64,000 nucleotides of DNA from Neoechinorhynchus agilis (lineage: Eukaryota; Animalia; Acanthocephala). The DNA lies in the NCBI GenBank assembly GCA_051530055.1, contig CM121341.1:1054001-1118000 (forward strand), read 5' to 3'. Below the pieces are notes generated by a model that worked only from the letters and a program-made list of their open reading frames with translations, did not search any database and was not told where the DNA came from. Below are positions 9,623 through 36,008 of this stretch, piece after piece; the first letter of the stretch is position 1, and each line of letters opens with the position of its first letter. The translations under genes were made by a program, and so were the position numbers.

Positions 9623-12600
9623 ATGGACTCTACTCAGTCTCTTCCTATAAAGTTCCATGAGCATCTCACTCTTTCATCGGTTGGAATTCAATCTCCCAAC
9701 ATTGGATTCGCAACGGTCACGATGGAATCCGATCGGTTCATTTGTGTCCGAGACAAAGTTGGTGATGTGAGTCAAGTAGTCATAATCGACATGCGGTCAC
9801 CTTCTACACCAACTCGACGTCCTATAACAGCTGATTCAGCAATAATGAATCCTCAGCATAAGATCATTGCCCTCAAAGCTGGTCGCACTATTCAGGTGTT
9901 CAATATTGAACAAAAAGCAAAGATTAAATCACACGCATTGGCCGAAGACTGTGTTTTCTGGAAATGGCTATCCGTAAATACGCTTGGTTTAGTTACCAAA
10001 AGCGCTGTCTACTATTGGACATTGGAGATCGATACAAGTGAACCATTGGATCCACCTTCATCAAGTGAGCCACTGAAGCAATTTGATCTCCAAACAAATC
10101 TTCAAGAAAGTCAAATAATCAATTTCAGAACTGATTCTAGTCTCAAATGGGCCGTCATTGTCGGTATTGTCGCTAACGACAACCGGGTTGGTGGCAGAAT
10201 GCAATTGTATTCCATTGATCGGAAATTGAGTCAAGCAATCGAAGGACATGCAGCTGCATTCACCGAATACACATTTGATTCGAACCCGCAACCTTCAAAA
10301 TTGTTTTGTTTTGCTTTTCGATACAGCAACGAAATGAATGGAAAGCTCCATATCTATGAACTAGGCTCGCCCCCAACGAGTAATAAGGCATTCAAAAAAA
10401 GAACAACTGAAATTGTCTTTAGTGCTGATGCTTCTAATGATTTTCCGGTTGCTATGCAGATTGGTTCTAAACTTGGTGTTATTTACCTAATTACTAAATA
10501 TGGGTTTGTTTATTTATTCGACATACAAACTGGAGGAGAATTGTTTTCGAATCGAATCTCGGCTGAGACTGTATTCGTGACTGCCGTTGAAACTGTGACT
10601 TCTGGGATTATTGGAGTTAATCGGAAGGGACAAGTATTAAGTGTTAGCGTGGACGAGGATAATGTTGTTGGATATGTGAGTCAAGTTATGCACAATCCTG
10701 ATCTTGCATATGAATTCGCTGTTCGGAATAAACTTACGGGAGGAGACCAAATGTTCGTTGAAAGATTTAAGAGTCTTTTTTCGTCTGGTAATTATGCCGA
10801 AGCAGCAAAAGTCGCTGCCATTGCACCTGGAAACGTACTGAGAACTCCACAAACCATTCAAGCATTTCAAAACGCAGCTCAAACCACCGGACAGACCGCC
10901 GGACAGTCTTCCCCTGTCCTTCAATACTTTGCGGCTCTTCTAGAGCATGGAGGTCGTCTTACTAAATTCGAGTCAGTTGAACTATGTCGTCCAGTCGTAC
11001 AACAAAACAAGAAGAACTTGCTTGAAAAATGGCTGAAGAACGATCGTATCGACTGCAGTGAAGAACTGGGAGATATGGTGAAGCCGCTGGATGCAAACCT
11101 AGCACTCTCCATCTATATAAGAGCAAAATGCCCCGCTAAGATCGTTCAATCGTTCGCTGAGACTGGCCAACATGATAAAATTGTATTATACGCCCGAAAA
11201 ACGGGATATAGTCCTGATTATATCAGCATTCTGCGAAATCTATGCAAACAGAATCAATCCGATCAGGCCTTGACTTTTGCCAAATCTTTGGTTTCCAGTG
11301 AAGGAGAACATGCGATTGATGTAGACCGAGCAGTGGATGTTTTTTTAGAAAGTGGACTTGTCTTACAATGCACTGCTTTTATGCTTGAGGCTCTAAAGAA
11401 CAACAAACCAGAGGAAGGACAACTTCAAACGCGTTTACTCGAAATCAATTTAGTGCATTCTCCCCAGGTAGCCGATTCCATTCTTGCGAAAGGAGTTTTA
11501 ACTCACTATGATCGGGCTCATGTTGCTCAACTGTGCGAAAAAGCAGGTCTTGTACAAAGGGCACTTGAACATTATACTGACCTTTACGATATTAAACGAA
11601 CCGTTGTTCATTCGAATCTTTTAAATCAAGAATGGCTCGTATGCCCGTGAGTCTCAGAAGTTGTGGGTTCTTTCAAAGTTCATTTCTATTATCCGTTGAT
11701 TCTCGTATTATTTTGCTTTCCCTGAACTTGTTTCTTGTACGTCTAAGACTCACGGCAACTGTAAATTACTTTGGCCACCTCTCAGTCGAAGACAGTATTG
11801 ACTGCCTTCGTACAATGCTTCAAGGGAATCTTAGACAAAACCTTCCGGTCGTCTGCCAAATTTCCATAAAGTACCATCAACAACTCACAGATAACGCCCT
11901 GATCGAATTGTTTGAATCTTTTAAGTCATATGAAGGTCTATTTGTGTTCCTTCAAGCGATCGTTTCGTTCAGCGAGGATCCAAATGTCCATTTCAAATAT
12001 ATTCAAGTAGCTTGTAAGACTGGACGTTATAAGGACGTAGAACGTATCTGCCGGGAGAGCAGTTGTTACGACGCTGAAAGGGTAAAAAACTTTTTGAAGG
12101 AAGCAAAACTTCCAGATCAACTCCCATTGATTATTGTCTGCGACCGATTCAACTACGTCCATGACCTAATTCTGTATTTATTCAGAAACGGGTTTCAAAA
12201 TTATATTTCTATCTACGTTCAAAAAGTCAATCCCAAACGGCTACCGTTGGTGGTCGGTGCAATGCTGGATGTGGACTGTGGAGAAGATGTGATAAAACAA
12301 GCCATAGCGAGTGTTCCAGTGAACGGTTTCAGTGTTGAGGAACTTGTTGCTGAAGTCGAGAAAAGGAATCGAATAAGACTTTTATTGCCTTGGCTTGAAT
12401 CTCAAGTTCACAAGGGCGTTAACGATCCATCTATTCATAATGCGATCGGTAAAATCTACATAGAATCGAACAACAATCCCGAGAGGTTCTTAAAGGAAAA
12501 TCAGTATTATGATAGTTTGGTCGTGGGGAAGTACTGCGAAAAACGGGATCCTCATTTGGCTTGTATTGCTTATGAAAGAGGGAAATGTGATGATGAGCTT

Positions 12601-15016
12601 GTTAGTGTTTGTGAGGAGAATTCGTTATTTAAAGTAGAAGCTCGATATCTGGTTCGAAGGAAAGATCCTGACTTGTGGACCCGGGTTCTGGCAAATACAA
12701 ACGAGAAACGGAAACAGCTTATTGATCAAATCGTTCAAAGTGCTTTGTCTGAGACACAAGATCCAGATGAGATCTCCGTTACGGTTCGAGCCTTCATGGC
12801 TGCTGATTTGCCTAATGGACGCAAGTCTTTTATGCGAAGGGCCCTATAAGCAGACTCGAAACATTTTGTTCTTAATTTTCTTATTTTTGTTACCCACAAG
12901 AAGAAATTGCACCACGTTTACTTTGAACAAAAGACTTGTGTCCGATAAGCATTTGATTGAACTCCTTGAAAAGATAGTTTTGGAGAATTCCGTATTCAGT
13001 CAGCACCGCAACTTGCAAAATCTATTAATCCTGACAGCGATTAAAGCGGATAGTTCGCGTGTGATGGATTACATTAACAAACTGGACAATTACGATGCTC
13101 CAGATATCGCGAATATCGCTATCACCAATCATCTATACGACGAGGCTTTCGCGGTGTTCAAACGATTTGACGTGAACACGTCAGCTGCTCAGGTTTTAAT
13201 AGAGAATATTCGAGATCTTGATCGCGCTTATGAATTCGCCGAGAAATGCAATGAGCCATCAGTATGGTCTCTGTTAGCTCGAGCTCAACTCCAAGAAAGC
13301 CAAATCAAAGAAGCGATCGATTCCTACATAAAAGCCGACGATCCAACCAATTATATCGAAGTAGTTAACGCAGCAAGTCAGTCCGGAGCGTTCAATGACC
13401 TTGTTCGGTACCTAGGAATGGCACGTAAAAAGGCACCCCGGGAAACGTATATCGACTCTGAATACGCGTTCGCTCTGGCTAAAACCAATCGTTTACAAGA
13501 CTTGGACGAGTTCCTTGCAGCTCCGAACCACGCTCAAATAGGCGATGTCGGCGATCGATGTTTTGACGAAAAACTTTATGAGGCAGCGAAGCTTTTGTTT
13601 AACTCGATGTCGAATTACGGCAAACTCGCTGTGACTTTATGCCAGTTGGGCGATTATCAAGGAGCCGTTGACGGTGCACGAAAGGCGAATTCGGTGAAGA
13701 CGTGGAAACAAGTTTGTTATGTCTGTGTGGATCGACAAGAGTTCAGATTGGCTCAAATGTGCGGACTTCATCTTGTAGTTCACGCTGACGAGCTTCATGA
13801 ACTCATTCAATTCTACGAATCACGAGGTCATTTCGATCAACTCACTAATCTTCTTGAAGCAGGACTTGGCCTTGAGCGCGCTCATATGGGAATGTTCACT
13901 GAACTTGCCATCCTGTACACGAAATATAGACCTGAAAAACTAAAAGAACATCTCGAACTCTTTTGGTCTCGACTTAACATTCCGAAGGTATTGAAAGCAT
14001 GCGAGAAAGCTCATCTTTGGGCAGAGTTGGTTTTCCTTTATGACAAATACGAAGAATACGACAATGCTTTGCTGTCAATGATGGAACATCCGTCGGTAGC
14101 GTGGAAGGAAAGTCACTTTAAAGACGTCATTACAAGGGTAGCCAATACAGAGCTCTATTACCGAGCAATGCAATTCTATATTGATTTCAAACCTCTTCTT
14201 TTAAATGATCTCATGACGATAGTGTCCGCGAGGCTGGATCACACTCGAACGGTGAATTTCCTAAAGAACCATCCAGACGGAAGTCACCGTATTCGCATGG
14301 CAAAACCTTACCTACGTGCAGTTCAAAGTCTCAATAACAAATCCGTAAATGAAGCTTTGAATTCTTTGTTAATCGAAGAACGTGATTATTTTGGTCTAAG
14401 AAACTCAATAGACGGCTATGACAATTTCGACAATATCGCGTTGGCCTCTAAACTTGAATCTGATCCGAATGTCGAGTTCAGGAGATTAGCTGCATATTTG
14501 TTTAGAGGAAACAATCGCTGGGCGCAGGCTGTTGATCTATGTAAAAAGGACAATCTGTATGTTGACGCAATGACCTATGTCTCAGAATCCGGTCAACAAG
14601 ATTTGGCTGAGAGTTTGTTAAGATGGTTTGCAGATAATGACCTCAATGATTGTTTTGTCGCCTGTCTTTACCACTGCTACCATCTCTTGAGGCCCGATAT
14701 AGTCATGGAACTCGCTTGGAGTAATGGTTTTACCGATATTGCAATGCCTTATTATATTCAAACATTGGCTGATTTGACTTTGAGAGTCGAACGTCTTGAG
14801 TTGGCTGAAAAGAGGCGAGAGGAGGTGGAAGCGGGTGACGAAAACCATGGACCTCCAATGCTCGCTGATACGTTAGCCACTCAATTGATGTTGACTTCTG
14901 GCGGCGGCGGTGGCGGTTCCAGTTCTGCTTCTGGCAACGACGTGTATGGTGGCGGATTTGGAGGTAAACAAGCCGATCCAAGTGGATTCCTCGGAGCATC
15001 TTCTGGAAGGTATTGA
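9623..15016 (+). CDS. CLTC: Clathrin heavy chain, three coding segments (9623-11638, 11761-12816, 12950-15016; ~1,712 aa)
   Basis: [25 protein letters not shown]-terminus, CHCR repeats, QLMLT C-terminal motif; the three ORFs join in frame. Confidence 0.98.
11639..11760 (+). other. 122-nt TIR-bounded intervening sequence in CLTC (candidate non-canonical intron)
   Basis: TIRs 11642-11661 and 11739-11757 (17 pairs); GTA direct repeat at both ends; removal gives EWL|VNYFG. Confidence 0.75.
12817..12949 (+). other. 133-nt TIR-bounded intervening sequence in CLTC (candidate non-canonical intron)
   Basis: TIRs 12817-12831 and 12929-12943 (14/15 plus G-U); TAA direct repeat; removal gives DLPN|HLIELLEK. 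Confidence 0.75.
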
Positions 15017-15589
15017 TGTTGTTTGCGAACAATAGAGTGAGAGAATTGGCGCTTAAAAACGAAAAATACATCTTTAAAAATAAGGAATTTTTGAAAATTA
15101 ATTTCTTTAGTGTTCTGCGGAATATTAAAAATTCATTGGTTCTTCGTAAGGCGCCGCAATTAACTTGTGGATCATATCAATGAACACCTTCGTTCCGCTT
15201 CGAAATGTTCCAATGGAGAAAAGCTAAAATATTACAGAAAAGCTAGTGGCTGATAGTTTATTGCTGAGCGCTTTTGATAACAACTGCATGTTGCTTCTTT
15301 AGATTCATTGAGGTCTTTAACTTTGGCGGAATGCCCTAAAAGAGTAACCCTTGCATATCCCAACTTTTCTGTCACCGACGAGTTGAACCCATTTATGATG
15401 CATTTGCCCAAGCCATTTAGAACTTAGTTCAGTGCTAAAGTTTTACTTTTAATTACGAAATTCCGTGTGTTGCTTTCAGCGCCGTTCAAAAATTGAGGAA
15501 AAAATTGAATTGCATTGAATAATGTAATCCAAATATCTTTTACGTTGCAAATACAAAATCTTTAATACCGATAAGAAACGATGAATTTA

Positions 15590-16020
15590 CGAATCACTTT
15601 GATCTCTTATCTCGACCAAATCTTACCAACATTAACATCACCGCTCTGGAATACTGAGCTGCCGTCCTGGTTTAATGGTCGAGTGACACCGCCCGGTCTA
15701 CGGCGGATATCGAGTCGGCAAAGATTGGTTGGCTCTTGGATGTTGGGCGAATTCACAGTATTCAGGGTACGACTAAGAGCAGAATCCCAAACTAATTGTT
15801 TGCAAGCATTGACGGTTACCTGCTCGCTACCGGAATCTTCACACCAAAGATTAAGTGCCTTCACGAAATCTTCATCCAAAGTATAATTTTCACCAAGAAC
15901 GGATTTAACTATTGTGGGTTTGCTTCATACGATCCCAAATAAGAGGCTGGCAGAGAAATATCGGCTGTTTTCCTGATACCCGAACCGCCGGACGACACAG
16001 GTAAGGACGCTTGAACCGAA
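15590..16020 (-). mobile_element. CRE-type (restriction-like endonuclease) non-LTR retrotransposon fragment
   Basis: QASLPVSSGGSGIRKTADISLPA (RT C-terminus) followed by EPTNLCRLD.RRP.GVT (RLE motif). Confidence 0.75.
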
Positions 16021-16023
16021 GAA

Positions 16024-16700
16024 GTGCAACGCCAGGTGGATCCGCTGTCGTCCATGCGAGCACCACATCTCACCACTCTATCAGGTTTTTCTCTTCGCTT
16101 CTTAACTAGACCAATCCCCGAAGAAGTGCAACGCCTGGTTGATCCGCGATGGAGTCCACGCGCAAAGATCGCATCTCACGACTCTATCGGTTTTTTCTTT
16201 ACTTTTTAACTGGACCAATCAACGAAAAAGTGCAACGCCTGGTTGAATTGCGATGGAATTCAGCCGAGCACTGGATCTTCACGTCGATCGGTTTTTCTCT
16301 TTACTTTTTAACTGGACCAATCAACGAAAAAGTGCAACGCCTGGTTGAATTGCGATGGAATTCAGCCGAGCACTGGATCTTCTCGTCGATCGGTTTTTCT
16401 CTTTACTTTTTAACTGGACCAATCAACGAAAAAGTGCAACGCCTGGTTGAATTGCGATGGAGTTCAGCCAAGCACTGGATCTTCTCGTCGATCGGTTTTT
16501 CTCTTCACTTTTTAACTGGACCAATCAACGAAAAGGTGCAACGCCTGGTTTAATTGCGATGGAGTTCAGCCGAGCACTGGATCTTCTCGTCGATCGGTAT
16601 TTCTCTTCACTTTTTAACTGGACCAATCAACGAAAAACTGCAACGCCTGGTTGAATTGCGATGTTCAGCCGAGCACTGGATCATCTCGTCGATCGGGTTT
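16024..16700. repeat. Tandem repeat, 102-bp unit, ~6.7 copies
   Basis: GTGCAACGCC recurs at 16024, 16126, 16230, 16332, 16434, 16536 and (CTGCAACGCC) 16638; the first two units are more diverged. Confidence 0.95.
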
Positions 16701-17089
16701 CTCCAACACTTTTTTTAACTTATCTTAGTCCATCTCTTTCAGCTTTTGAGACTCAATGCTCTTACTTAGCCTATCAAAAATGGATGCACTCAGCCACGAT
16801 AATAGGCACTTATTTTTTAATGATTTCACCGACTACATCGTTTAGCTCGAAGTGCTGTTCCAACTGCGTAGCATAATTGACTCGTTTCTCCGATTCCTCG
16901 AAATACCTGAATGGCGTGATCTTCGTTTTCGGCCCATTCGGCGAAAGTACAATTGGACTCTAATAAATTCGTTGACGCCAAAGACACTAGCACTTCGTTT
17001 TCACCAATTAACAAAAGGCAATTTATTTGGACTAAGGCGTTTGTATTTTGTTAGAGGAAATTCTAGAATAAGGAAAAAAATTTGAGCAT

Positions 17090-17920
17090 AATTCCCCAAT
17101 TACTTTAGACTTTGACATTAAACGAATTGAGGATTGCCATTAATTGAGATATTTTAGCGGCATCTCCAATCATTTACCTTGGTATCCACAATATTAGCCG
17201 AAATTCGTTACTTTGTTTTTTTTGTCCCACATCGTGCACCAAAGCTGCAAGCAACATTGCAAGATTTTCTAATATTGAAAACCTGGATTATCGATTTTCT
17301 TATAAATGTGGTTGCGCCTAGTCATCAACTCATAAAGCAGCCGTTAAATTTCACTTTTGAAAAAAAAGCCTTCGACTTTAAAGTTTTGGCATTTAAAAAT
17401 CGCTGTTTTTCTGGACAGCAATCTCCATGCGAGCATATCGGTTTTTTATTTTGTTAGATTGATAAACCCGTGTTTCCATGGTTACTAGTCTCGTATAAAA
17501 CGAGTTCTACACTTGGTGAAGAAGAGTGAGATTTTGATTAGTTTCGATGGTTACGCATGGCTCTGCCAAACCTATGACCAAGGGACGAATTGAGGATTGC
17601 CATTAATTGAGATATTTTTCCGGCATTTCCAATCATTTACCTTGGTATCCACAATATTAGCCGGAAATTCGTTACTTTGTCCTTTATGTCCCACATCGTG
17701 CACCAAAGCTGCAAGCAACATTGCAAGATTTTCTAATATTGAAAACCTGGATTCCAATGTACACTGCGTACACTGAGTAGCACTTAGTTCCAATGGGTCC
17801 ATTGGTATCGAGGTTTTTTGTCTTTAGAAAACCTTTCGCTGTTCAGTGCTGCTTTAATGCACGATGTTGTTCATGAAGGACGTAGTAAGGAAATTCCGGT
17901 TAATATTAAGGATACATTGG
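17090..17920. pseudogene. Three copies of a cyclic-nucleotide phosphodiesterase HD-motif exon (two minus, one plus)
   Basis: ENLAMLLAALVHDVGHKGQSNEF (minus, ~17640-17760; damaged duplicate ~17170-17290) and ENLSLFSAALMHDVVHEGRS (plus, ~17826-17915); each followed by a GT donor. Confidence 0.6.
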
Positions 17921-19631: not shown

Positions 19632-20700
19632 TTGAAAAGATAATTCATTGTTATTTGTCGATAGGAGAGATAAATGAAATTAAGATTTTATTGGATATTT
19701 CGATCCACTATCTCGGATCTTCTTCAGCGATCTAAAACACGTATACACAGGGATTCTCAATTCACGCGTCACATAACATCCGGCGGGAGTCGCATCCTTA
19801 ATTTGAAATCAGGTTTATTGCCCTCGAACGTTTCGAACATATTTATAAGGATTCGATGACAATACGTTCGAAACGCCGACCATTGCAGACTAGTGTTGTA
19901 GCGCCACTAAAATCAATAGTGTGCCCTGTGTTTTTTGCATGGGCCACCACTGCGGAACTAATATCCGTGTTGCAAACAAATCCGTCGGGTGAAATTGTTG
20001 GTCTGCCCCACATAGACCTGTTCACAACCGGAGCACGGAATTTTGGAGACCGCACCAGATGACTGTTGGCCATTCTTGGGACATATCAATCCGTGTAGAG
20101 TGCGTCCCACTCTCTTGGCCTCACATCCTGATTTTATGATGCGTTCCATAGCAAGAATGATCATCAGGGAATGGCAGTTTAACGTGGATTTCTTCATTTT
20201 TAGACTTTTTCTCCCCATTGAAGGTTCGACAAGATGGAGACCTGATATGTACTTTAGGTAACCAATCTCCTCGTTACACAACTTGGCGTTGCTACAATGT
20301 GTAAGAGCACGGTGGATGAGTGACCTAATCCTCAAAATTTTGTATTTGCGAGGTTGGGCTGATGTCCATGGTACAAGGCCCACTGGTATACTTCTCTTTC
20401 GGTACACGCTGGTCGTGTAGTTTCCACTGGCTAATCGGTATATCCACACATCCAGGAACGGAAACTTACCATGGTCCTCCTCCTCGATCGTCCACTGAAT
20501 ATTGTCGTCCCTTCCATTTAGTTCATGTTTAAGGCAATTCATATTAGTCTCTGAAGGGTCGATCAACAGGAACGTGTTGTATCGACGGCGAATGTTCGTC
20601 CTCCCAGTGCCGCATATACAAAATTTCGAGGATTAGGTTACTCATCCTCCGTGCTCTTACATTGTAGCAACGCTAAGCTATGTAACGAGGAGTTCGTTCG
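19632..20700 (-). mobile_element. 5'-truncated Penelope-like element with 3' end and an inverted internal segment
   Basis: RT thumb (FPFLDV, TSVYRK), GIY-YIG (CSGC.QVYVGQT); 20621-20695 is an inverted copy of 20266-20340. Confidence 0.88.
19694..19727 (-). ncRNA. Minimal hammerhead ribozyme core at the Penelope 3' end
   Basis: Minus strand CTGAAGA-A-GATCC-gagatagt-GGATC-GAAA-TA-TC: intact core, 5-bp helix II, palindromic ATAT helix III, AUC triplet; helix I imperfect. Confidence 0.72.
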
Positions 20701-20796: not shown

Positions 20797-20981
20797 AGTT
20801 TCAATTAGCGATGTTTGATTCAGAAAAGAGAATTATCTTGAAAACTTTAGGCCTTTTCGTTGGCCTTCTTCAGTCAATTGTTAAATTGTTTTATTAACAA
20901 TTGACTGAAAAAAGCCAACGAAAAGGCCGAAAGTTTTCAAGATAAATCTATTTTCTGAATCAAACATCGCTAATTGAAACT
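20797..20981. repeat. Palindrome (two 88-bp arms, 9-nt loop), each arm carrying a hammerhead-like motif
   Basis: Right arm CTGAAAA-AA-GCC-aacgaaaa-GGC-CGAAA-GTTT; left arm (minus) CTGAAGA-AG-GCC-aacgaaaa-GGC-CTAAA-GTTT. Confidence 0.88.
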
Positions 20982-20994
20982 CATTTATTTGAGA

Positions 20995-21026
20995 AATATT
21001 TCACAAGGTTTTCCTTGCCTCTTCAG
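20995..21026 (-). ncRNA. Second hammerhead-like core
   Basis: Minus strand CTGAAGA-G-GCAAGG-aaaa-CCTTGT-GAAA-TA-TT; helix I poor. Confidence 0.5.
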
Positions 21027-21661
21027 TAACTATTGATTGTGAGTTTTTAATGGTCTTACCCTACGGGACCGACGATCCTAAGTCACTAGTCAAAATGAAC
21101 AATCATGTAGAGATTCAATCGGTCGAAATATATTCGTCTTTAACGATTTCCCTCGGGTGTCGATGAACCAAACTAAACAATTTAAATATTGCACGTTTGA
21201 CGTCATAAGAAAACCCTGTAAATAACGACGAAAGAATCTCAAAATATTTCCAATTCTGAGAAACAGTGTTTAAAATCATTCGGCATAAATTTAATGGTTG
21301 GGCGGTGATCAATTATTTGATATTTCCGGACGTTGCCGAATGGTGGAGCTGTATTTTTCGCATGTAATCACCCCCATTTTTCGCTCGTGATATTTTGTAC
21401 TTTTACATTGCTGTTAATTGGCCAATAATGGATTTGTGAATTCGTAAATTTCAACTCTCCTTTTTTTGTTGAATTTTTATTGATCGTCATTCTTTCTGCG
21501 ACAAAGCGCTTAAATAAAAAAAATCGTTCAGTTCAGAGTTCTGAAATGGGTTGGGTTTTATGGGATTTGAATTTTTTAAAGATCGTGAGTGTATTTTTGT
21601 GTATGGTCGACGCTTCTTTTTTTGCTTCCGGATTTCAGAAGATTTTTCAAAAAAAGGAACA

Positions 21662-23016
21662 ATGAACGCCGCAGTTTCCAGTACGGAATCGAATCCAAAC
21701 AGTATATGGCTCAATTCGAAAGGAACTTGGGTCACATATCTCTTTCTGGTTGCTTTAGTTCATTTATTCTGTTTAAGCATACCGTTCATCGGGACACCGA
21801 CCGCGTGGACGCTTACCAATACCATTCATAATGTCCTCTCGTTCTATTTGATTCATATGATCAAGGGAACTCCTTGGGAGAGTGTAGTGCGGTTTTAAAT
21901 GATCCAAAAATGGGGGCTTTTTAATGGATTTTTGAGCGCTCTTAAGACGCGACTCCTGATTCCCTTTCGACGGTATTTCGTCCACTTTTTTTAAAGAAAA
22001 AAAATTCATGTCTCAAGTCTTTATAGCGAATTATAATTGATTGATTTTTGATAACTCTCAGCCTTCTTCATCAGTCTATTGCTCTTGTAAATGGCCTACA
22101 CGAAGGCTGAAAATTATCAAAAATAAATCAATTATAATTCGCTATATGAAAAAAAAACAACCAAGGAATGTACAAACTTCGGCCAATTATTTTATCAGAT
22201 TTGTTGCTAGTCGGCCACCTTTTTTCTAAGTGTGTGTTGGCTGACTTCTGGGACACACAGCCCTCTCCGAAAATCACATTTAATAACCTAATTATCAGGG
22301 GAAAGGGATTTAGTAATCGGAAATAAATCAGTAAATTTAAATCCGAAGTGGCAAACCTACCAAAAGAAACTATCTTTCTCAAGAAAACTCATAGCCTTTT
22401 ACCTAAGAAATCAGCCATCATTTCTCAATACTTTCAAAATGTAACCATAAAATGATTAATTTTAATGTTAAATAAGACGAAAATCGTGAATTGTCTTGGT
22501 GTAGAATTTTTGTACAGAAAAATAATTCACAAAAGTTCAATTCTTTTTCAATGTCGCTTTTTACACTTCTACGAGACTTTTAAATGATGAACGGCGTTGT
22601 TTTTTCAATAGTTTTGTGAAGTATTAAGCGACATTGAATCGCCTACTCTTGTTGCTTGTTATTAAGAAACTCTAATTTTGATTTTGAACGTACCAAGAAA
22701 AATCGGTCATGATTTTTGTCATTTTAATGAAAACCCAATGGAATTTCACTTGTATTAACTGATCCTTCAAAACCGCATAGACCAAGGTGAAGCTAGAAAA
22801 TATACATATTGGGAACAAATCGATTATGGCGAATATTTCACTTCTACTCGGAAGTTCCTCATTTGTGTTCCGATCATATTATTTTTCTTGGCCAGTTTTT
22901 ACACCAAATACGACCAATTCCACTTCGTAATCAACTTGGTGACGATGCTAGTCGTAGTCATAGCTAAACTTCCTCAATTTCATGGCGTTCGATTATTTCA
23001 AATCAATCAGTATTGA
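21662..23016 (+). CDS. ORMDL: ORMDL family sphingolipid regulator (exons 21662-21887 and 22781-23016; 153 aa)
   Basis: [30 protein letters not shown]|[26 protein letters not shown]. Confidence 0.97.
21888..22780 (+). other. 893-nt TIR-bounded intervening sequence in ORMDL (candidate non-canonical intron)
   Basis: TIRs 21888-21904 and 22761-22777 (15/17); TAG direct repeat at 21885-87 and 22778-80. Confidence 0.8.
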
Positions 23017-24369
23017 ACACTTCTTTCCATTAAAGTAATCAACGAATCTACAAGACGGATCCACTATAAATTATGTGATTATGATAAAGAAACGAGTATT
23101 TCAAGTCGTTGCATGGTCGGATTTTCGGGTTGGAAATTAGGATTTCGAGAATTCGTCTCTAGAATAGCCAGCTCTCTCTGACGATCGGTCTTTTTAATCA
23201 TCAACGACTATTTTATCGTCTTTGTTTTCTAACAAATCCTCCCATCGCCGTCCTCAAATGGTTCATCGTAAAACCTAAGCTCTGATTTATATTATATTGC
23301 GGCAATCATTGCACATTGACGATGAATTCTTGTTAAAATATCTGCTCGCTACTAAAACATCGCTAATCATCCTTCGGATCGATTTTACGTGATTGACTAG
23401 TCGGTTTCGTCACCAACATCTTTTGTCTACCCATTTTTTAACATGTTATCGAAATGCACAAATCTACTTTGCTATTTATCCCAGTTGCTGATCAGATTGA
23501 TTTACTCACTTTTGATTATGATGATATGTTTTATCGCGAATGAGTTACTAAGTGGCTAATACTGAGACGAATGTTATTTCAATTATTAACTGTGATTAGT
23601 AATGATCTATAGAATGATTGAAAAACTCCACTTAACCTCCTTTGAAAGAGCTCATATTATTCGACTTCCTTACCAACGCTTTGACGCTTTCTAGTGCTGT
23701 TTTGACGGCGTAGATCGATTAGGCAAAAAAAGTCAATTTTCACAAGATGCAAAGATAGTTTCAGAACCATTTATAATCTTCCTAAATCTAATCTTAAATG
23801 TTATTTGCAATCTTCCACTATATAAAGCAAAATCCGTATATGTGAGTGTGTGAACACGGACGAAAACGGAGAAAAAGGAGAAAATGCAGTACTTCAAATC
23901 CTAAAAAAACTTTTCGAAGCATCATTGAAGACTCGCCAAAACCCGCCATCGTGGTTAGTCCTCATATTTTCAAAGAGGTTCTCATATAATATTAGAAGAC
24001 AGTAACAATCGATAACGGAAACCTTTTAAACAAGTTGGATACTCGATTTCCACAGTTAAATGACCACTCTCAAAAGTTAGATTCTCAGAGAAAAGAACTA
24101 TAAAGTAGAGAAACCAGCAGAGTATATAGACGACATTTTTAGATATGTTTTCCCTGTTGATGCCACAGAAGGAGCCTTCCTTTGCATTTTTCGTAAGCTC
24201 GTCGCTTTCCCTCAACAACTGATAGATGATGTCTACCGAGCCATATAACGGAATTATACAGATCGCAACTGGTTGTGTGATGGAGCGTAACATTATCAAC
24301 AGGGCTCAGAGTCTGTCACTCACCACGGACAATTGTATGTTTTGGATTATTGTATTTGGGAGAAAAGAG

Positions 24370-24572
24370 ACTTTCTTTTTCTTAGTTATACCACCACTCA
24401 GATTCAAAAAATTCACTAATCTGTATTTCCCCGATATTTCACCTCTCGGATAATTCCGAGATTTAAAACCTTGATGAAATGTCGGAATTATCCGAGAGGT
24501 GAAATATCGGGAAATATAGATTAGTGAATTTTTTGAATCTGAGTGGTGGTATAACTAACAAAAAAGAAAAGA
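24370..24572. repeat. Palindrome (~95-bp arms, 12-nt loop) with a degenerate hammerhead-like motif
   Basis: Right side reads TTGATGA-aatg-TCGGA-atta-TCCGA-gaggt-GAAA-TATC (24471-24508). Confidence 0.85.
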
Positions 24573-26778: not shown

Positions 26779-26821
26779 GTATTTACGAAGAAAAACGCTT
26801 TTTTGAAACTAACGACCACTC

Positions 26822-27088: not shown

Positions 27089-27154
27089 CGAACGAATTTA
27101 AACGCCTTCTAGGCAGCGAAGTCGTGGCGAATCCACGTACGGAAGACCTTTTTG

Positions 27155-30100
27155 ATGGAGTTTTCTTTAGAATATTTGAATACTTTTTTGCATTTCGAAA
27201 ATTGTGCATCCGAAAACAATCGGATTTAATCGAAATTCCTTCAATTTTCAGCCGTCTTCTAGAAAAAGGTCATGGACAATTCAATCTTCTAACAAGCAGA
27301 ATGATCTTGATCGCTAAGAAAAGATTGAACAGTTTACAAAGTATTTATTGAATGATTTTTGAGCATAACCCCGGGTTTTCATGGAGTTTTCTTTAAAATA
27401 TTTAAATACTTTCTACATTTCGAAAATTGTGCATCCGAAAACAATCGGATTTAATCGAAATTCCTTCAATTTTCAGCCGCCTTCTAGAAAAAGGCCATGA
27501 ACAATTCAATCTTCTAACAAGCAGAATGATCTTGATTGTTAAGAAAAGATTGAACAGTTTACAAAGTATTTATTGAATGATTTTTGAACATAACCCCGGG
27601 TTTTCATGGAGTTTTATTTAAAATATTTAAATACTTTTTTGCATTTCGAAAATTGTGCATCCGAAAACAATCGGATTTAATCGAAATTCCTTCAATTTTC
27701 AGCCGCCTTCTAGAAAAAGGCCATTAACAATTCAATCTTCTAACAAGCAGAATGATCTTGATTGTTAAGAAAAGATTGAACAGTTTACAATGTATTTATT
27801 GAATGATTTTTTAACATAACCCCGGGTTTTCATGGAGTTTTATTTAAAATATTTAAATACTTTTTTGCATTTCGAAAATTGTTCACCTGAAAACAATCGG
27901 ATTTAATCGAAATTCCTTCAATTTTCAGCCGCCTTCTAGAAAAAGGTCATGGACAATTCAATCTTCTAACAAGCAGAATGATCTCGATCGTTAAGAAAAG
28001 ATTGAACAGTTTACAAAGTATTTACTGAATGATTTTTGAGCATAACCCCGGGTTTTCATGGAGTTTTCTTTAAAATATTTAAATACTTTCTACATTTCGA
28101 AAATTGTGCATCCGAAAACAATCGGATTTAATCGAAATTCCTTCTATTTTCAGCCGTCTTCTAGAAAAAGGCCATTAACAATTCAATCTTCTAACAAGCA
28201 GAATGATCTCGATCGTTAAGAAAAGATTGAACAGTTTACAAAGTATTTATTGAATGATTTTTGAACATAACCCCGGGTTTTCATGGAGTTTTATTTAAAA
28301 TATTTAAATACTTTCCACATTTCGAAAATTGTGCATCCGAAAACAATCGGATTTAATCGAAATTCCTTCAATTTTCAGCCGTCTTCTTGAAAAAGGTCAT
28401 GGGCAATTCAATCTTCTAACAAGCAGAATGATCTTGATTGTTAAGAAAAGATTGAACAGTTTACAAAGTATTTATTGAATGATTTTTGAACATAACCCCG
28501 GGTTTTCATGGAGTTTTATTTAAAATATTTAAATACTTTCTACATTTCGAAAATTGTGCATCCGAAAACAATCGGATTTAATCGAAATTCCTTCTATTTT
28601 CAGCCGTCTTCTAGAAAAAGGTCATGGACAATTCAATCTTCTAACAAGCAGAATGATCTCGATCGTTAAGAAAAGATTGAACAGTTTACAAAGTATTTAT
28701 TGAATGATTTTTGAACATAACCCCGGGTTTTTTTGGAGTTTTATTTAAAATATTTAAATACTTTTTTACATCTTAGAAATTGTGCATCCGAAAACAATCG
28801 GATTTAATCGAAATTCCTTCAATTTTCAGCCGTCTTCTAGAAAAAGGTCATTTACAATTCAATCTTCTAACAAGCAGAATGATCTTGGTTGTTAAGAAAA
28901 GATTTAGCACTTTACAAAGTATTTATTGAATGGTTTTTGAACATAATCCCAGGTTTTTATGGAGTTTTCTTTAGAATATTTGAATACTTTTTTGCATTTC
29001 GAAAATTGTGCATCCGAAAACAATCGGATTTAATCGAAATTCCTTCAATTTTCAGACGTCTTCTAGAAAAAGGTCATGGACAATTCAATCTTCTAACAAG
29101 CAGAATGATCTTGATCGCTAAGAAAAGATTGAACAGTTTACAAAGTATTTATTGAATGATTTTTGAATATAATCCCGGGTTTTTATGGAGTTTTCTTTAG
29201 AACATTTAAATACTTATTTACATTTCGAAAATTGTGCATCCGAAAACAATCGGATTTAATCGAAATTCCTTCAATTTTCAGCCGTCTTCTTGAAAAAGGT
29301 CATGGGCAATTCAATCTTCTAACAATCAGAATGATCTTGATTGTTAAGAAAAGATTGAACAGTTTACAATGTATTTATTGAATGATTTTTTAACATAACC
29401 CCGGGTTTTCATGGAGTTTTATTTAAAATATTTAAATACTTTCTACATTTCGAAAATTGTTCACCTGAAAACAATCGGATTTAATCGAAATTCCTTCAAT
29501 TTTCAGCCGCCTTCTAGAAAAAGGCCATGAACAATTCAATCTTCTAACAAGCAGAATGATCTTGATTGTTAAGAAAAGATTGAACAGTTTACAAAGTATT
29601 TATTGAATGGTTTTTGAATATAATCCCGGGTTTTTATGGAGTTTTCTTTAGAACATTTAAATACTTATTTACATTTCGAAAATTGTGCATCCGAAAACAA
29701 TCGGATTTAATCGAAATTGCTTCAATTTTCAGCCGCCTTCTAGAAAAAGGCCATTAACAATTCAATCTTCTAACAAGCAGAATGATCTTGATTGTTAAGA
29801 AAAGATTGAACAGTTTACAAAGTATTTATTGAATGATTTTTGAGCATAACCCCGGGTTTTCATGGAGTTTTATTTAAAATATTTAAATACTTTCTACATT
29901 TCGAAAATTGTGCATCCGAAAACAATCGGATTTAATCGAAATTCCTTCAATTTTCAGCCGCCTTCTAGAAAAAGGCCATGAACAATTCAATCTTCTAACA
30001 AGCAGAATGATCTTGATTGTTAAGAAAAGATTGAACAGTTTACAAAGTATTTATTGAATGGTTTTTGAATATAATCCCGGGTTTTTATGGAGTTTTCTTT

Positions 30101-30205
30101 AGAACATTTAAATACTTATTTACATTTCGAAAATTGTGCATCCGAAAACAATCGGATTTAATCGAAATTGCTTCAATTTTCAGCCGCCTTCTAGAAAAAG
30201 GCCAT
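27155..30205. repeat. Satellite-like tandem array, ~226-bp unit, ~13.5 copies
   Basis: ATGGAGTTTT at 27155, 27381, 27606 and onward; units highly similar. Confidence 0.97.
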
Positions 30206-30556
30206 GTCTTGTGTGAATGGTGTTTTTGTGTATGTGTAGGTGTGGCGTATACTTATTTTGCCAGTAAATGCCCCGGCACTGTAGCGACCGCAGCGGAGCG
30301 CCGGATAGCGGCAAAATACGCTGAGCTGAAGGAGAGTTTCAATTTTGTGCCTTTCGGGATCGAAACGTTCGGGGCCCTCGGAGAATCCGCACTTCAGCTG
30401 GTTTCAGATATAGCAAGGAGGTCGTTGGCGATGAAAAGGGACCAACGTGCTCCAGCGTTCCTTAAACAAAACATCTCCCTCGCAGTACAACGAGGGAAGG
30501 CTGCCAGCGTGAGGAAAACCGCGGCTTCACAGAACATTATCTTCCATAACTTGTAA
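30206..30556 (+). mobile_element. 3' end of a CRE-type non-LTR retrotransposon
   Basis: AAERRIAAKYAEL..FNFVPFGIETFG...FLKQNISLAVQRGKAAS, typical RLE C-terminus. Confidence 0.88.
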
Positions 30557-30639
30557 AAATTAATAAGTTCTTATATTGATAAAAACAGATTCAAGTCTAA
30601 ATATTTTTATCCTCAATAACAACAATTTGATAACGATGA

Positions 30640-30990
30640 ATATGTCTTGTCTTACCAAAATCCACTGTATGCCTAGCCGTCCTCGTCCTCAATTATCGCC
30701 CAAATGCTTGCAGTGTTGCCTCTCAACACGGCGATGCTGATATTTTGAAGACCTTGTGTCACCGGTCATCACTCTCTCCCTCAAGCTCAACACCTTTAAA
30801 ATTTATATCCTCAAACGTCTCCGACGTCTAGGAATCTCTTCACCCGATCTCTACAAATTTTACTTCGGCTTTACCCTTTTCACACCAGCAGAACACTCGT
30901 AATCCCAATTATTTTATTCCTCCGTCGATCTCGCACCTCCCTATACCCACGCTCCTTTTTCCATGCTGCCCAATCTTCTCGGATATCACA
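30640..30990 (+). mobile_element. Degenerate LINE post-RT fragment
   Basis: KIYILKRLRRLGISSPDLYKFY resembles the region downstream of RT in CR1/L2-group elements. Confidence 0.5.
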
Positions 30991-31039
30991 ACTTGAAATG
31001 AACCTGAGGAAAGACCAACTTTACAAGCGACCAATTCCC

Positions 31040-31500
31040 ATCCGAACGAACCTCCCCCGACCGGACATTCCCACCCGAACGTACATACCAAGAAACCCAA
31101 AGGTACATGGGTCTAATTTCTTAAATACAAAATCAATAAAATGGCCCAACATCCTAGAGCCAAGCAATCTTTGCCGGCTCGATGGCCGTAGACCGAACGG
31201 TGTCACAGTATTCCCGTGGCGAAAAGACAAATGCGTTTTCTGGGACGTCACGTTCATGGATACGCTCGCAGCCAGCAACATAAAATTCGCCACTATTAAA
31301 CCGGAGGGGAGCAGCAACCGCCACTGAGGAACGCAAAAGGACAAAATACAAGGATTTGGGTCGAAATCATTATTTCGTTCCCTTTGGCGTCGAGACAGTC
31401 TGGTCGTTGTGTACCACGGCGCAGAGGAGCATTCCTCGTACAAAACATAAGAATGGCTGTGCAACGGGGGGAACGCCGCATCCGTCCTTTCGACCGTTTA
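31040..31500 (+). mobile_element. Second CRE-type RLE fragment
   Basis: EPSNLCRLDGRRPNGVTVFPW...WDVTFMDTLAAS, then FVPFGVET and IRMAVQRG. Confidence 0.85.
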
Positions 31501-31614
31501 ACTTGGACGGAAGCTGAGTGATCCAGAGCAACGGTGTGAATGATCTAACGTGTAATATAAATTTCATTTTACTTTAAAAATAAAATAAAATGTGTTATTA
31601 TTATGTATGGCCTC

Positions 31615-32065
31615 ACGGCTGATAATTTTCCTTGGGCACACAGCCCGTCGCTCTGGTCCAGGGAAGCGCATAACGGCGAACTTCCAGGATGCATACAACA
31701 ATTCCCTAAAAGTTACCGGCTGGCCAGACTTCAAAAAATAGAACAAATTCAATTGGCCAAAATTTTAAAATCAAAAGTGGCAGAGTTTGTACATTCCGTA
31801 GTTGTGTCGAGGTGGTCAAGTGGACAAAAGCTCAAGCTCCCAGTTTGGGTCAAAGGATTTGAATCCATTACCGTCGATGACTCACAACCAAAGGGAACGA
31901 AATACCTCGATGAAGGGAGGAAACTCACTGATGAATCCCGACTCCGCGGGAGGAAGCTCTGAGGATCCGGAGGAATGTATAAAACTCTTTACCATTTGTT
32001 TGAGGGTATCAAGTGATTCAATCACTTCCCTAAACCAGATCTGTGGGCTATGTGCCCAAGGAAAA
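31615..32065. repeat. Unclassified dispersed repeat; two copies in inverted orientation
   Basis: AATTTTCCTTGGGCAC..AGCCC..TCTGGT..AGGGAAG at ~31624 (+) and ~32065 (-); related pieces at ~35385-35480, ~38664-38713 and ~61845-61890. Confidence 0.55.
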
Positions 32066-33100
32066 TTCAACGAATTCTTCATCTCTCTTAACTTTAACTT
32101 CTTAATGGTAACGACATTGACATTCTTAAGCAACAAGTTTCGGAAGCTATCTTCCAAATTCAAAAATAAATTCTTTAATTTAAAATTATCTATATGAAGT
32201 TAGTTCCAACAAAATCTAATCGTCAGTTTTTTAATTTTGGCTGGTAGGCTGACACTAATTCGATCTACGACTCGCTTTTCCTACCTAAACCAATCAAAAT
32301 TCATTTTAATGCCCGCTAAAACCTTATTGGTCAGTAAATCGCGGTTTAAACAAAGATAAAATATACAACTTCTTAATCCGAGATTTACATTGATCGATGT
32401 TTTATTCTTAGCAGTACAGCTGCTTATGAAACAAGTTCAGTTTCATCGATCTTACAAATGTTGGAAATCTCAATAAAGTAGTTTTTAGAGGGTTTCGACG
32501 TCCCTCGCGAAAAAGCGCGAAAAACTAAAGTTTTGAAGCGATGTTAATATTGAAATTTGAAAATCGCTGAAGCATGATAGTTAAGCGTCTATACACGAGG
32601 AAGAAATTTTATTAAAAGAATTGCTTGCTTTAGATCGAATTTATCGAGTTGTGCCACATTTATCGCTGGTGCCGTTGGTCACAATTCAATATTTAGCCTA
32701 TTATTTTGTCGACTTAAGGCATTCATTTCAACAAGCTTTTAGATCTTTGCTTTTATCTCAGAAATACGATGACTAAATGCATTGCTAATCTTTTAATCTT
32801 GTCCAGATTTATGGATTGTCGCAAACGAAATGAAAAAAGAGCACTGCCTTCATTGCTTTGCTCAAACTTTCTGTTTTTGTAATCCTTTCGTCTTCAAAAT
32901 CAGTTCTGACTTTTTCTTATAAATTTAAAAATAGGTTCAATAACGTTGAATATGTGTAAGAAATCGGCTTTAAAAATTATTATATGTAATAAGTGTATTG
33001 GTTTCTTTTAAAATAGCGACCACATAACACGAATTTAAATTTGGACATAATCTCCTCCGAAAATATTCTATATTTTAGACTAATTTTATAAGTATTAAAA

Positions 33101-36008
33101 ATGCCTAGACGATATTCCGGGAGCAGCTCAAAAAAAGATTTCGCATTAAGCGAGGGTCCAACTGCGAAAAGACCTATTAGAAAGTGCCGACAGGTGACAC
33201 AGCCAATGGGATACTACGACGAAGGGCGATCATTTGAGGAGAAAACGGACGAATGGCCGTGTTCCGAAAGGCCCCTAAAGAAGAAATCCTCGCCTCAAAA
33301 ACGAGAGGAAAGCGAAAGTTCCGAATGGGAAGACATCAGTTTAGGAAGCAACCATACAGTTTGTTGTGGCGATTTAAAGAGTGTTAAAGTTGAAATTGAA
33401 AAAACATCTATTGAACCACCTGATCGCGTAATGCGTGGATGTATTGCACGTTTGGTACGTGATTTTCGAGTTCAGTGCCATCAAACAGCACTGGTATGCG
33501 CGGTGGCTCATTGTCATTATCTGTTGGGACCGGTGTTGGATTTAATGAAGGCTCTGAAGATGTCAGTCAAAATAGGTAATGCTGATTTAATATTATCGGT
33601 TTCCAATTATTGATCCTCTCGGTAATCGATATTGTCCATTCTGCGTTTCCGGAAATCAATTTATTCGCAAGAAAATCTATCATATGCATATTGAACCAAA
33701 GAAGAAAAACGAGGCTCTTATTCGGGTTTTCGCTAATTCCAACAAGAGCCATAAAAACGGAATCATCTGTTTGTAGGTGCGGTAGAACGGATCTTTGGGT
33801 TACAGTGCAGAGTTCGTCGAAAAACTGTGCTATTTGTAATTCAAATCGTTTTGGCTATTGGGTGGAGGAATGGAAGGCAAACAATTGGGTTACTTGTGAA
33901 GATACGCGATACTTTTAACGACTAGATTTCGTGATTAAGGTCTTTCTAAAAAATGCAATTAATTTTACAAGAAAATCCTTGACCTTTTTTGCAATTGTAA
34001 CAATAGGCTAAATTACAAGTGAACTTGTAGTATCGGCAATAGTCGTATTTCCAAGTCTAATTCGAGCAGAGCCACCATTGCCAAATGTATATTTTACCAA
34101 TAAAAAACTCTTATTCCAGTTAATATTGAAAAATCTGCAACATAATGATTTTGTTCCATTTATCGCCGTATTCGTGGATCTTTCTTCGATAAACGGTATA
34201 CATTTCTCTTGTAAAAATTATTAACGTAGAATTAAAATTCCAACGCCGTAACATTTCTATAGCCGTTGAAAAGTATCGATTAAAGAATCTTTAAAAGCGA
34301 AATTCTCCTATGTTTACGCAGCGATTAGAGAAAACAATGAGGTATTAGTGGAAGATGTTTCAAATCAATACATCGATACGCACCGATTAATTCGTAGATT
34401 TAAACGAATTGAACGATTTAGATCGAATTGGTACGATTTTTTTAAATCTGTATGTTTAAGGGAATCCGGAGCTTCTAATTTGATTCGTCATCCGGATCAG
34501 TTGAAATTACCGTTAAAAATAGATGATTTTAAAAATCATCCGGTTTATGTTTTGGAAAGACATTTGCTTAAATATGACGGAATATATCCTCCTGACGCTA
34601 AAGTGATCACCGAATTCCGTGGTTCGAAAGTGTATTTACGTAAAAATGTAGTAAAATTGCATTCTGCTCAAACGTGGCTTAAGGAAGCCCGGGAAATAAG
34701 GAGCGGAGAAGAGCCTTACAAGACTGTTTTGGGAAGGATATCACAAAGCGCTTATCGAAGAGGAGAAAGGCAAAGGCCTTCACTTGCATTGTTTGGAGAG
34801 TGGCAAACTGAACCTTATCAACCACCAATCGCCCAGGATGGTATTGTACCGAAAAACGCCTTTGGAAATGTAGATATGTTTAAACCCGAAATGTTGCCAC
34901 TTAATTGCGTCCATCTACAGCAGAAGGATTTGTATTTTCTAGGAAGCTTTAGGATCTTAAAAAAATTAAAAATGATCGCGGCTCTCGTCAAAGGAATTCT
35001 TTTTATGCTACGCTCGTAGGTCGCTTCCATTTCTTATTGAAAAGGCAAAAATAAAAGATAAAAATTATTAAAATAAGTACCTTAAATTCTAAAGTGATTA
35101 AAAAATCGAGATTTTTAAATGCAAGGTTGAAAAATGTCGAATCATTAAAGGATGAATTCGACAGTGAAATGTCCTTTATTTTATCTTATGTGTAGCGAGC
35201 CGCTTACACTTTTCTAGGTGTTGGAGTGAACATCCCTTACACGATCTGGGTCAGGGAAACGCAAAAAATCAATAAATACCAAATTTTGTGAATATTCTCC
35301 CGATTAAAACGTATTTTATTGTTTTTCTCGAGGAAGCCTTGCCTCGTCAGTCATTGCTAAAGAGTTTTATTCGCACTCTGCCTCTTCGGGAGATATCTGA
35401 GGATCCGGAGGGATGTACAAACTCATAACCGCACGGTTCAAGGTATTAAGTGACTTTATGCGCTTCCTTGAGCAAAATCGGTGGACTGCGTAACCGTAGA
35501 CGGAATGTTCACTTCTCGATTTTATTTTGAAATGTTATTTCTGTACACTTTGAATGTTATATGATAAAGTAATACGAATAGGCGGTTCGGAATGATTCTT
35601 TAATACTGAGACAACGCTATTATAAATTTTGGCTTTTATAGTAATTTGAGACGGTTACGAGTTGTTCCCGGCTATTGATTTTAGGACAATTTCTTCTCAT
35701 TTTCAAAGACTTCTGATTTAAGACATCCAATGGCGTCGAAGGCTTGTAAAAAGCTTGAAATCGACTTTGGCGCTGCAACGGTAGATTTCGATACTCATGG
35801 AGGTGGCTTTAGTCATCCTGTTTTTGATGGGATCGTTATATGTGAAGAATTTTTGGAAGAGGTTAATGCAGAAGTCAAAATTTTGGAAAAAAAACACAAA
35901 GACAATGAACAGAAGCAAAAACTGAATAGAGCTCTCCATTTTTGGACATTATTCATGAAGCAATATTCAATCGGAATGAAGTTATCGGATCGTCATGGAA
36001 CCAAATGA
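33101..36008 (+). CDS. XPC: XPC/Rad4 DNA-damage recognition protein (multi-exon; first junction unresolved)
   Basis: SEWEDI, YWVEEW, FKNHPVYVLERHLLK (BHD1), LFGEWQT, VPKNAFGNVDMF..MLP, KKLEIDF...FD.HGGGFSHPVFDGIVICEE (BHD3). Confidence 0.95.
33907..34278 (+). other. 372-nt TIR-bounded intervening sequence in XPC (candidate non-canonical intron)
   Basis: TIRs 33907-33924 and 34260-34278 (17 pairs); in-frame stop at 33916; CG direct repeat. Confidence 0.7.
34918..35720 (+). other. ~803-nt XPC intron with weak terminal complementarity
   Basis: CAGAAGgaTTTG (34921-32) versus CAAAgaCTTCTG (35704-15), 10/12; removal gives HL|RHPMASKACKKL. Confidence 0.4.

Follow-up and report, generated by a model that had tools for sequence, protein, structure and literature searches.

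We found that two short segments interrupting the clathrin heavy chain (CLTC) gene of the acanthocephalan Neoechinorhynchus agilis are removed from its mRNA exactly, at sites that are not GT-AG and between ends that can pair with each other, pointing to a second, structure-guided form of intron removal in an animal. The gene lies in a window of 64,000 nt (assembly GCA_051530055.1, contig CM121341.1, positions 1,054,001-1,118,000), and all coordinates below are those of this window. Read directly from the sequence, conserved coding sequence is broken at five plus-strand sites: CLTC (CLTC-1 and CLTC-2) and an XPC/Rad4-like gene (XPC-A and XPC-B) have two each, and ORMDL has one. A previous reading of the same DNA, made from the letters without other data, had placed five interruptions at these positions and had claimed that they are bounded by terminal inverted repeats and removed at non-GT-AG sites from essential genes; transcripts bear this out for CLTC, and exact colinearity with acanthocephalan relatives does so for ORMDL and XPC-B. 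The combined evidence supports the presence of inserts with inverted-repeat ends that are removed at non-GT-AG sites from essential genes that also carry ordinary introns.

The evidence for CLTC comes from the transcript contigs of four runs (X1 to X4), all from one 2025 study and with a library type labelled "RNA?", that is, guessed; these contigs were aligned across 9400-15300, the one locus treated in this way. Runs X1, X2 and X4 each yield a single contig of 5.2 kb and X3 yields several shorter ones, spanning 9592 to about 15050-15074. The contigs have depths of 218 to 327 and match the window without a mismatch over 5.2 kb, untranslated regions (UTRs) included; depth is about zero outside, and its confinement to 9592 to about 15074 gives an mRNA-like pattern. 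In all four runs 122 nt (joining 11638 to 11761) and 133 nt (joining 12812 to 12946) are skipped. Depth over both inserts is zero, the bin means being equal to exon depth multiplied by the exonic fraction, and the share of sampled words of 10000-15000 found in the four runs (0.93) is as expected if nothing but the two inserts and the words across their boundaries were absent.

An artefact, whether a reverse transcriptase jump across a hairpin or an insert-free paralogue beside dead copies in the window, is very improbable as the source of these joints. Template-switch deletions classically arise at short direct repeats beside a stable hairpin, and an insert-free full-length CLTC copy would escape protein searches limited by length. 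However, artefacts are normally a minority of the molecules, and here none of the four libraries has any depth over either insert. Furthermore, the CLTC reading frame would stop at 11650 if the inserts were not removed, and the ORMDL protein would end after 75 residues, yet the exons of both genes are intact and conserved; the agreement of the 5.2-kb contigs with the window extends into the UTRs, and the 675-aa open reading frame (ORF) is found at a single place. For dating the inserts, no CLTC fragments of the acanthocephalan Pomphorhynchus laevis were found among proteins of the length ranges searched.

Both CLTC joints slide over exactly 3 nt, and none of the eight resulting registers is GT-AG, GC-AG or AT-AC. 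The possible termini are GT..CT, TA..TG, AT..GT and TG..TA for CLTC-1, whose removal gives EWLV|NYFG in the mRNA, and TA..GA, AA..AT, AT..TA and TG..AA for CLTC-2, giving ADLPK|HLIE (a vertical bar marks a join). For the latter the earlier reading had chosen 12817-12949 (GG..AG, ADLPN|H), which is one base past the permitted slide of the RNA joint and is corrected here. A U12-type (AT-AC) intron was considered and rejected, as the AT registers read ATGCCC..GT and ATGGAC..TA and are not ATATCC-like. One joint per insert was assembled in all four runs; Logan contigs lose rare variants, and minor joints could go unrecorded.

Next, we investigated whether the ends of the inserts pair. The energy of the duplex formed by the 25 nt at either end was compared with that of 3000 random 25-mer pairs taken from the window at the same distance (mean -6.5 kcal/mol, sd 3.2). 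The ends of CLTC-1 pair at -22.7 kcal/mol (p = 0.0007), with arms of 17 nt at 11645-11661 and 11739-11755 that are 88% complementary, and its whole-element fold has a z-score of -1.9. Those of CLTC-2 pair at -25.0 kcal/mol (p < 0.0003, with 0 of the 3000 random pairs as stable; whole-element fold z = -3.5). Its arms, 12809-12839 and 12921-12951, are 31 nt long and 77% complementary, and the helix crosses both junctions into the exons. Because both TAs lie within this helix, their T|A steps face each other in the predicted fold, with single mismatches on both sides. Both joints sit 0-6 nt outside the stems. Canonical sites buried in these stems are bypassed: an in-frame GT..AG pair at 11647-11747, with the consensus donor GTGAGT and the acceptor CTAAG, lies unused within the CLTC-1 stem, and another at 12825-12933 lies unused inside the paired arms of CLTC-2. 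A canonical introner, spliced by GT-AG, was rejected for the CLTC elements on the same observation. The use of internal GT-AG sites, which the sequence-only reading had named as the outcome that would refute it, thus fails for CLTC, where the four runs assemble TA-restoring joints only.

In ORMDL, the closest protein is that of P. laevis (76% identity), whose gene is intronless and collinear at the nucleotide level with the TA-restoring join, and this gap-free colinearity fixes the junction. The arms, at about 21888-21905 and 22760-22777, are paired at 15 of 18 positions and the ends pair at -17.7 kcal/mol (p = 0.006). The spliced form is suggested by homology and by the second exon, which is intact and conserved despite the stop that precedes it in the unspliced gene. 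RNA runs X7-X10 contain 0.96 of the words of 21640-23020, a span of which 65% is insert, compared with 0.97 in DNA run X6; the insert-bearing ORMDL sequence in X7-X10 is either unspliced RNA or contaminating DNA. One may speculate that unspliced ORMDL would also fit an insert that is removed less efficiently because it is long and its stem weaker. The insert also holds a nested inverted repeat at 22022-22066 and 22102-22146, with 45-nt arms that are 93% complementary and a 35-nt loop, which looks as if a second hairpin element had inserted into the first. A search for transcript-derived ORMDL, CLTC and XPC proteins of N. agilis itself was made in a protein collection that seems to consist of ORF calls from the assembly only, and gave no match.

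The two XPC inserts differ in how their joins and stems are defined. For XPC-B, the relative P0004 (UniParc, 74% identical) reads ...GCVRVHHPHAVKAC... and aligns gap-free to ...NCVHL|RHPMASKAC..., and the wider stretch ...EMLPIGCVRVHHPHAVKACRRL... aligns without a gap to ...EMLPLNCVHL|RHPMASKACKKL..., which fixes the join at TA. Its stem consists of a 6-bp core (34921-34926 with 35710-35715) and extra pairs, with an end pairing of -12.5 kcal/mol (p = 0.048). The earlier description of XPC-B as a weak case therefore holds for the stem and not for the junction, which the P0004 alignment fixes. For XPC-A, the ends pair at -17.7 kcal/mol (p = 0.002), with perfectly complementary arms of 10 nt at 33907-33916 and 34269-34278 that become longer if one bulge is allowed. 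Besides the TA register, XPC-A can be read as 33905-34276 (372 nt, with the CG repeat of the earlier reading), and the orthologue alignment does not separate the two, the loop being of variable length. There is also an in-frame GT..AG option of 378 nt at 33896-34273.

The interior of XPC-B (35389-35487) contains a dispersed repeat that recurs at 31958-32049 and 61844-61890, with 73-85% identity. An additional break of the XPC frame lies at about 33560-33690, with one in-frame GT..AG option of 110 nt and several TA-bounded options of 68-74 nt with weak pairing.

It could be that cryptic GT-AG sites are used throughout and that ordinary splicing masks miniature inverted-repeat transposable elements (MITEs), since an in-frame GT..AG pair lies within 30 nt of every one of the five junctions and that of XPC-A has the same length as its TA option and a plausible GTGAAG donor. 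We regard this as scarcely credible. RNA excludes GT-AG use for both CLTC inserts, and in ORMDL and XPC-B every GT-AG option would introduce or remove residues in comparison with the acanthocephalan relatives, which align without gaps. In XPC-A the GT-AG option changes WVTCE to WVTLS and so loses the acidic residue of a W-x-x-x-[DE] motif that is kept in 15 of 15 orthologues. For XPC-A, the in-frame option of equal length is a correction to the earlier reading.

Across the five inserts, the ends are complementary in every case and the pairing reaches p <= 0.006 in four. All share a TA direct repeat in the pattern T|A...T|A (G-TA, TA-A, TA-G, TA and TA, in the order CLTC-1, CLTC-2, ORMDL, XPC-A and XPC-B), so that the repeats GTA, TAA, TAG and TA reported from the sequence are recovered and XPC-A is readable either as TA or as the CG given there. 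Duplication of a TA target site is the footprint left by elements of the Tc1/mariner type, and the T|A...T|A pattern of all five inserts corresponds to such a footprint. The arms are 10-31 nt long and the direct repeats 2-3 nt, excluding the shorter core of XPC-B. Within the 64-kb window, the whole of the sequence searched, the five inserts have no match to one another and their arms no further copies, in keeping with the earlier claim that the terminal repeats are mutually unrelated. Since the arms are unrelated in sequence, the property common to the inserts is structure together with TA. A census scan of the whole window, which required TA...TA pairs to have a terminal stem and to keep the ORF continuous, returned hundreds of chance matches, lost CLTC-1 and CLTC-2 to the ORF filter and was dropped.

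Table 1. Genes, inserts and splice features of the 64,000-nt window (window coordinates).
Feature	Position	Strand	Details
CLTC mRNA	9592-15074	+	Exons 9592-11638, 11761-12812, 12946-~15074; from RNA contigs; Clathrin Pfam domains in ORFs
Canonical AG acceptor, CLTC mRNA 5' end	9590-9591	+	Every contig matches from 9592, just after ctgcAG
CLTC hairpin intron 1 (CLTC-1)	11639-11760	+	122 nt; slide 0 to +3; TA at 11640-41 and 11762-63
CLTC hairpin intron 2 (CLTC-2)	12813-12945	+	133 nt; slide 0 to +3; TA at 12813-14 and 12946-47
ORMDL gene	21662-23016	+	Exon 1 21662-21885, exon 2 22779-23016 (T|A register); PF04061
ORMDL hairpin intron, predicted by homology	21885-22777	+	893 nt; slide 0 to +3; TAG repeat
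XPC/Rad4-like gene	33101-36008	+	ATG 33101, stop 36006-08; at least 3 interruptions; 1976 XPC-family matches
XPC interruption A (XPC-A)	33903-34280	+	378 nt; TA register; slide 0 to +2
XPC interruption B (XPC-B)	34916-35718	+	803 nt; TA register; slide 0 to +2
Two predicted 46-nt GT-AG introns, NUP42-like gene	7015-6970, 6905-6860	-	Removal joins zf-CCCH ORF in frame

Known animal biology offers a close parallel in SOS splicing, which Zhao et al. (Nature 2025, PMC12779559) described in human cells and in C. elegans. It is triggered by the pairing of inverted repeats regardless of their sequence, operates independently of the spliceosome and is conserved between nematode and human; its cuts fall within or close to the repeats and seldom at GU-AG, it requires AKAP17A, CAAP1 and RTCB, and its substrates include TA-duplicating Tc1/mariner elements (PMC12779559). 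The inserts described here resemble these substrates, as pairing inverted repeats of any sequence bound the excised segment and the cuts fall at or near the repeat ends and are non-GU-AG, again in an animal. The assembly and DNA run X6 contain the inserts and CLTC mRNA lacks them, in a comparison between data sets and not between DNA and RNA of the same animals.

On these grounds we consider it about evenly balanced whether MITE-like inserts are here removed from RNA by an SOS-like, hairpin-triggered route. The inserts would have originated as old non-autonomous, TA-duplicating inverted-repeat elements in coding exons and would now be obligatory introns. The gene would be transcribed with the insert still present, and the insert ends would pair into a stem that brings both TA copies together and may serve as the recognition signal. 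Removal of the insert together with one TA from the RNA, followed by rejoining of the exons, would then restore the sequence as it was before the insertion. By analogy, the machinery acting here may be that of spliceosome-independent SOS splicing (AKAP17A, CAAP1 and the RTCB ligase), triggered by the hairpin and working precisely and constitutively on fixed inserts. The wider proposition, that acanthocephalans have turned an SOS-type, RTCB-sealed RNA cut-and-ligate pathway into a precise, constitutive second intron system, with transposon inserts tolerated in conserved cores of essential genes and fixed genome-wide, is more tentative and stands somewhat below even.

Several points weigh against this SOS-like route. 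Published SOS splicing, presented in 2025 as a form of emergency repair, is imprecise, with several isoforms, indels and many products out of frame, and was studied on recent or engineered insertions; its authors find exonic transposon insertions to be rare and purged (PMC12779559). Here, a single exact TA-restoring joint per insert was assembled in four runs, from contigs that omit rare variants, and the inserts lie in conserved domains of essential genes and are apparently fixed. The stems are shorter and imperfect, at 10-20 bp with mismatches compared with the 54-nt repeats of Tc1. The spacer between TA and stem varies from 0 to 6 nt across the inserts, so that the cut sites are not explained by a simple ruler from the stem base. 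The transposon origin is argued from anatomy, with no copies of the inserts in the 64 kb searched, and the role of the SOS factors in this genome is argued by analogy. Finally, the ORMDL and XPC joints are predicted from homology, and the type of the transcript runs is a guess. Evolution may have retained only those inserts that give one exact main product, or the pathway may have become precise.

Removal could in principle occur in DNA, by a programmed somatic excision like that of the internal eliminated sequences (IESs) of Paramecium, with the assembly representing germline DNA. In Paramecium, a domesticated transposase cuts the IESs out of the DNA in a separate somatic nucleus, and Tc1/mariner insertions are regarded as their ancestors. 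The likeness in anatomy is considerable, as the inserts are short (0.1-0.9 kb), intragenic and bounded by TA at both ends, and their precise removal leaves one TA; RNA contigs, moreover, do not by themselves distinguish removal at the RNA level from removal in DNA. We nevertheless judge such an excision improbable. Unlike Paramecium IESs, the inserts here are present in DNA data, both the chromosome-level assembly and run X6, and, for ORMDL, in RNA. The recovery of ORMDL words in X7-X10 extends to the insert and its boundaries, which argues that insert-bearing templates are transcribed, barring genomic DNA in the libraries; if this sequence is pre-mRNA, the transcribed template retains the insert, which argues against excision from DNA. 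In addition, the arms are all different and thus offer no single transposase site, and we know of no difference between soma and germline genomes in Acanthocephala. Overall, the data lean to removal at the RNA level, with inserts in the assembly and in X6, CLTC mRNA that lacks them and RNA runs that contain the unspliced ORMDL stretch.

The spliceosome itself may be responsible, in a relaxed form of the major type as in Fritillaria borealis, with the hairpin as a transposon relic or an aid that brings the ends together; this is the main rival reading, possible though less likely. Fritillaria is an animal precedent with a proven spliceosomal route: about 95% of its introns are non-GT-AG, mostly AG/AC and AG/AT with YAY, many derive from MITEs (PMC13326754), their removal depends on the U2-type spliceosome, and the genome has duplicated U2AF (Henriet et al. 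2019; Soo et al., NAR 2026, PMC13326754). The two animal genomes share an efficient removal of non-GT-AG introns with a short repeated motif at both boundaries. A working spliceosome is also present in N. agilis. The letters upstream of 9592 in the CLTC contigs differ by run and are not those of the adjacent genome, and with contigs that start right after ctgcAG this indicates that a normal acceptor is used, at 9591|9592, in the same CLTC mRNA from which the hairpin introns are removed; predicted GT-AG introns lie nearby.

However, the termini and triplets of the inserts do not fit those of Fritillaria. Neither AG/AC nor AG/AT occurs among the eight registers allowed by the two introns verified in RNA, and the YAY triplet is found neither before the 5' site (CTC/TCG/CGT/GTA in CLTC-1 and GCC/CCT/CTA/TAA in CLTC-2) nor at the very end of the intron (ACT/CTG/TGT/GTA and CGA/GAT/ATA/TAA, respectively). 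What the inserts have instead is a TA repeat and strong end pairing. The consensus GTGAGT donor of CLTC-1 is bypassed although an in-frame AG is available, and both ends are held in a stem, which should impede the binding of U1 and U2AF. Nearby canonical introns, as far as their sequence indicates, seem to retain strong GTRAGT..YAG signals, which argues that site recognition is not generally relaxed.

The comparison with ordinary introns covers selected genes, as Pfam named few of the remaining ORFs of the window. In the NUP42-like gene, for which a hand-picked intron set joined the first three exons only, the two predicted introns of Table 1 read GTAAAC..TTTAG and GTGAGT..GACAG and have end pairings of -4.3 and -4.6 kcal/mol, at the background level. 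The sequence-only reading had held that the canonical introns lack paired ends; this is confirmed for four predicted NUP42-like introns (-2.1 to -5.7 kcal/mol), the sole introns covered.

Among the systems compared, the introner elements of Amoebophrya share the anatomy of the inserts most closely. In this dinoflagellate parasite more than 60% of introns are non-canonical, and the elements have inverted repeats of 8-20 nt and direct repeats of 3-5 nt that overlap the boundaries; the authors suspect a non-standard mechanism (Farhat et al. 2021, PMC7789003). Here, too, an inverted repeat joins the ends, a direct repeat lies at the boundaries, the termini are not fixed and the elements are MITE-like and without a transposase. 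In contrast, the Amoebophrya elements form repeated families and have variable direct repeats, whereas the repeat here always contains TA and no families are found within 64 kb. The nonconventional introns of Euglena (Nomura et al., PNAS 2025, PMC12501133) likewise coexist with conventional introns and have ends that pair close to the boundaries. They carry the signature 5'-N3-CDG...CH'G-N5-6|R and lack the TA repeat; no register of CLTC-1 or CLTC-2 fits this signature, and only one register of XPC-B does (CAG-CAG...CTG-ATTTA|A). A bulge-helix-bulge intron of the tRNA type, in which a 4-bp helix separates two 3-nt bulges at the cut sites, was also rejected, as CLTC-2 presents a 2-bp UA/UA step with 1x1 mismatches and CLTC-1 differs again.

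Further observations concern the ends of the CLTC mRNA and the neighbouring genes. Three upstream sequences, ...ACTTACAAGCA, ...ACTTTAACA and ...CTACTATAACA, are joined at 9591|9592 in three runs, and one of them is similar, with 1 mismatch over 18 nt, to the centre of the palindromic element found at 7925-7963. These differing sequences could be alternative 5' exons or reflect spliced-leader trans-splicing. A spliced leader is known from bdelloid rotifers (PMC1925144), and our search of the literature found no report of one in acanthocephalans. Towards the other end, the CLTC mRNA of three of the four runs carries a GGC insertion relative to the assembly at 14899, an in-frame length polymorphism. 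Part of the NUP42-like gene has an inverted second copy 30 kb away, at 37104-37337 on the plus strand compared with 6742-6945 on the minus strand (...STFDSDNLQQS..GSNGWVTTCVGVATVKGNFEGL...).

We also observe other repeats in the window. Upstream of CLTC, a TA-flanked foldback element of about 193 nt (7848-8040) is 92% self-complementary and has partial copies at 19643-19718, indicating that hairpin MITE-like repeats also occur outside coding sequence. A palindromic element of about 177 nt at 24382-24558 is likewise 92% self-complementary, with end pairing down to -46 kcal/mol. An array at 54400-59700, of units of about 228-229 bp with a purine-rich strand, contains repeated ORF fragments (...MHSGRCWTRGYKPLYNG...GIGISERFRDAIKDAER) and adjoins a reverse-transcriptase-like ORF at 62571-63668 on the minus strand. 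A scan of the entire window (1-64000) against Rfam at gathering thresholds returned no family, so that a palindrome at 20797-21026 that had been read as a hammerhead falls short of the Rfam cut-off.

Hairpin-defined non-canonical introns and SOS splicing are already known; what is new is the phylum, Acanthocephala, and the transcript-level proof of exact joints in the CLTC gene of this genome. The word "intron" is absent from the papers on the N. agilis genome and transcriptome (PMC12690905), the P. laevis genome (PMC7310846) and rotiferan gene loss (PMC12256650), and our literature search found no paper tying Acanthocephala to non-canonical introns. Gene annotation based on GT-AG would break genes that carry such inserts. 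The published N. agilis genome reports no more than 47% of metazoan BUSCOs as complete (PMC12690905). Missing BUSCOs have been taken as a sign that genes were lost as parasites evolved (PMC12256650); some of them could instead be an annotation artefact of inserts that GT-AG gene finders cannot remove.

Should the spliceosome prove responsible, acanthocephalans would be a second independent animal lineage, after Fritillaria, beyond the GT-AG rule, with different signals. If the SOS route is true, a whole animal genome would rely on exact hairpin-guided excision to express clathrin, ORMDL and XPC, and these inserts would be natural substrates, of a pathway whose natural targets are barely known, for finding what sets the cut site. 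A constitutive system of this type would give animals a counterpart of the dual splicing code known from Euglena, and would mean that a bilaterian can acquire a second class of introns from transposon insertions.

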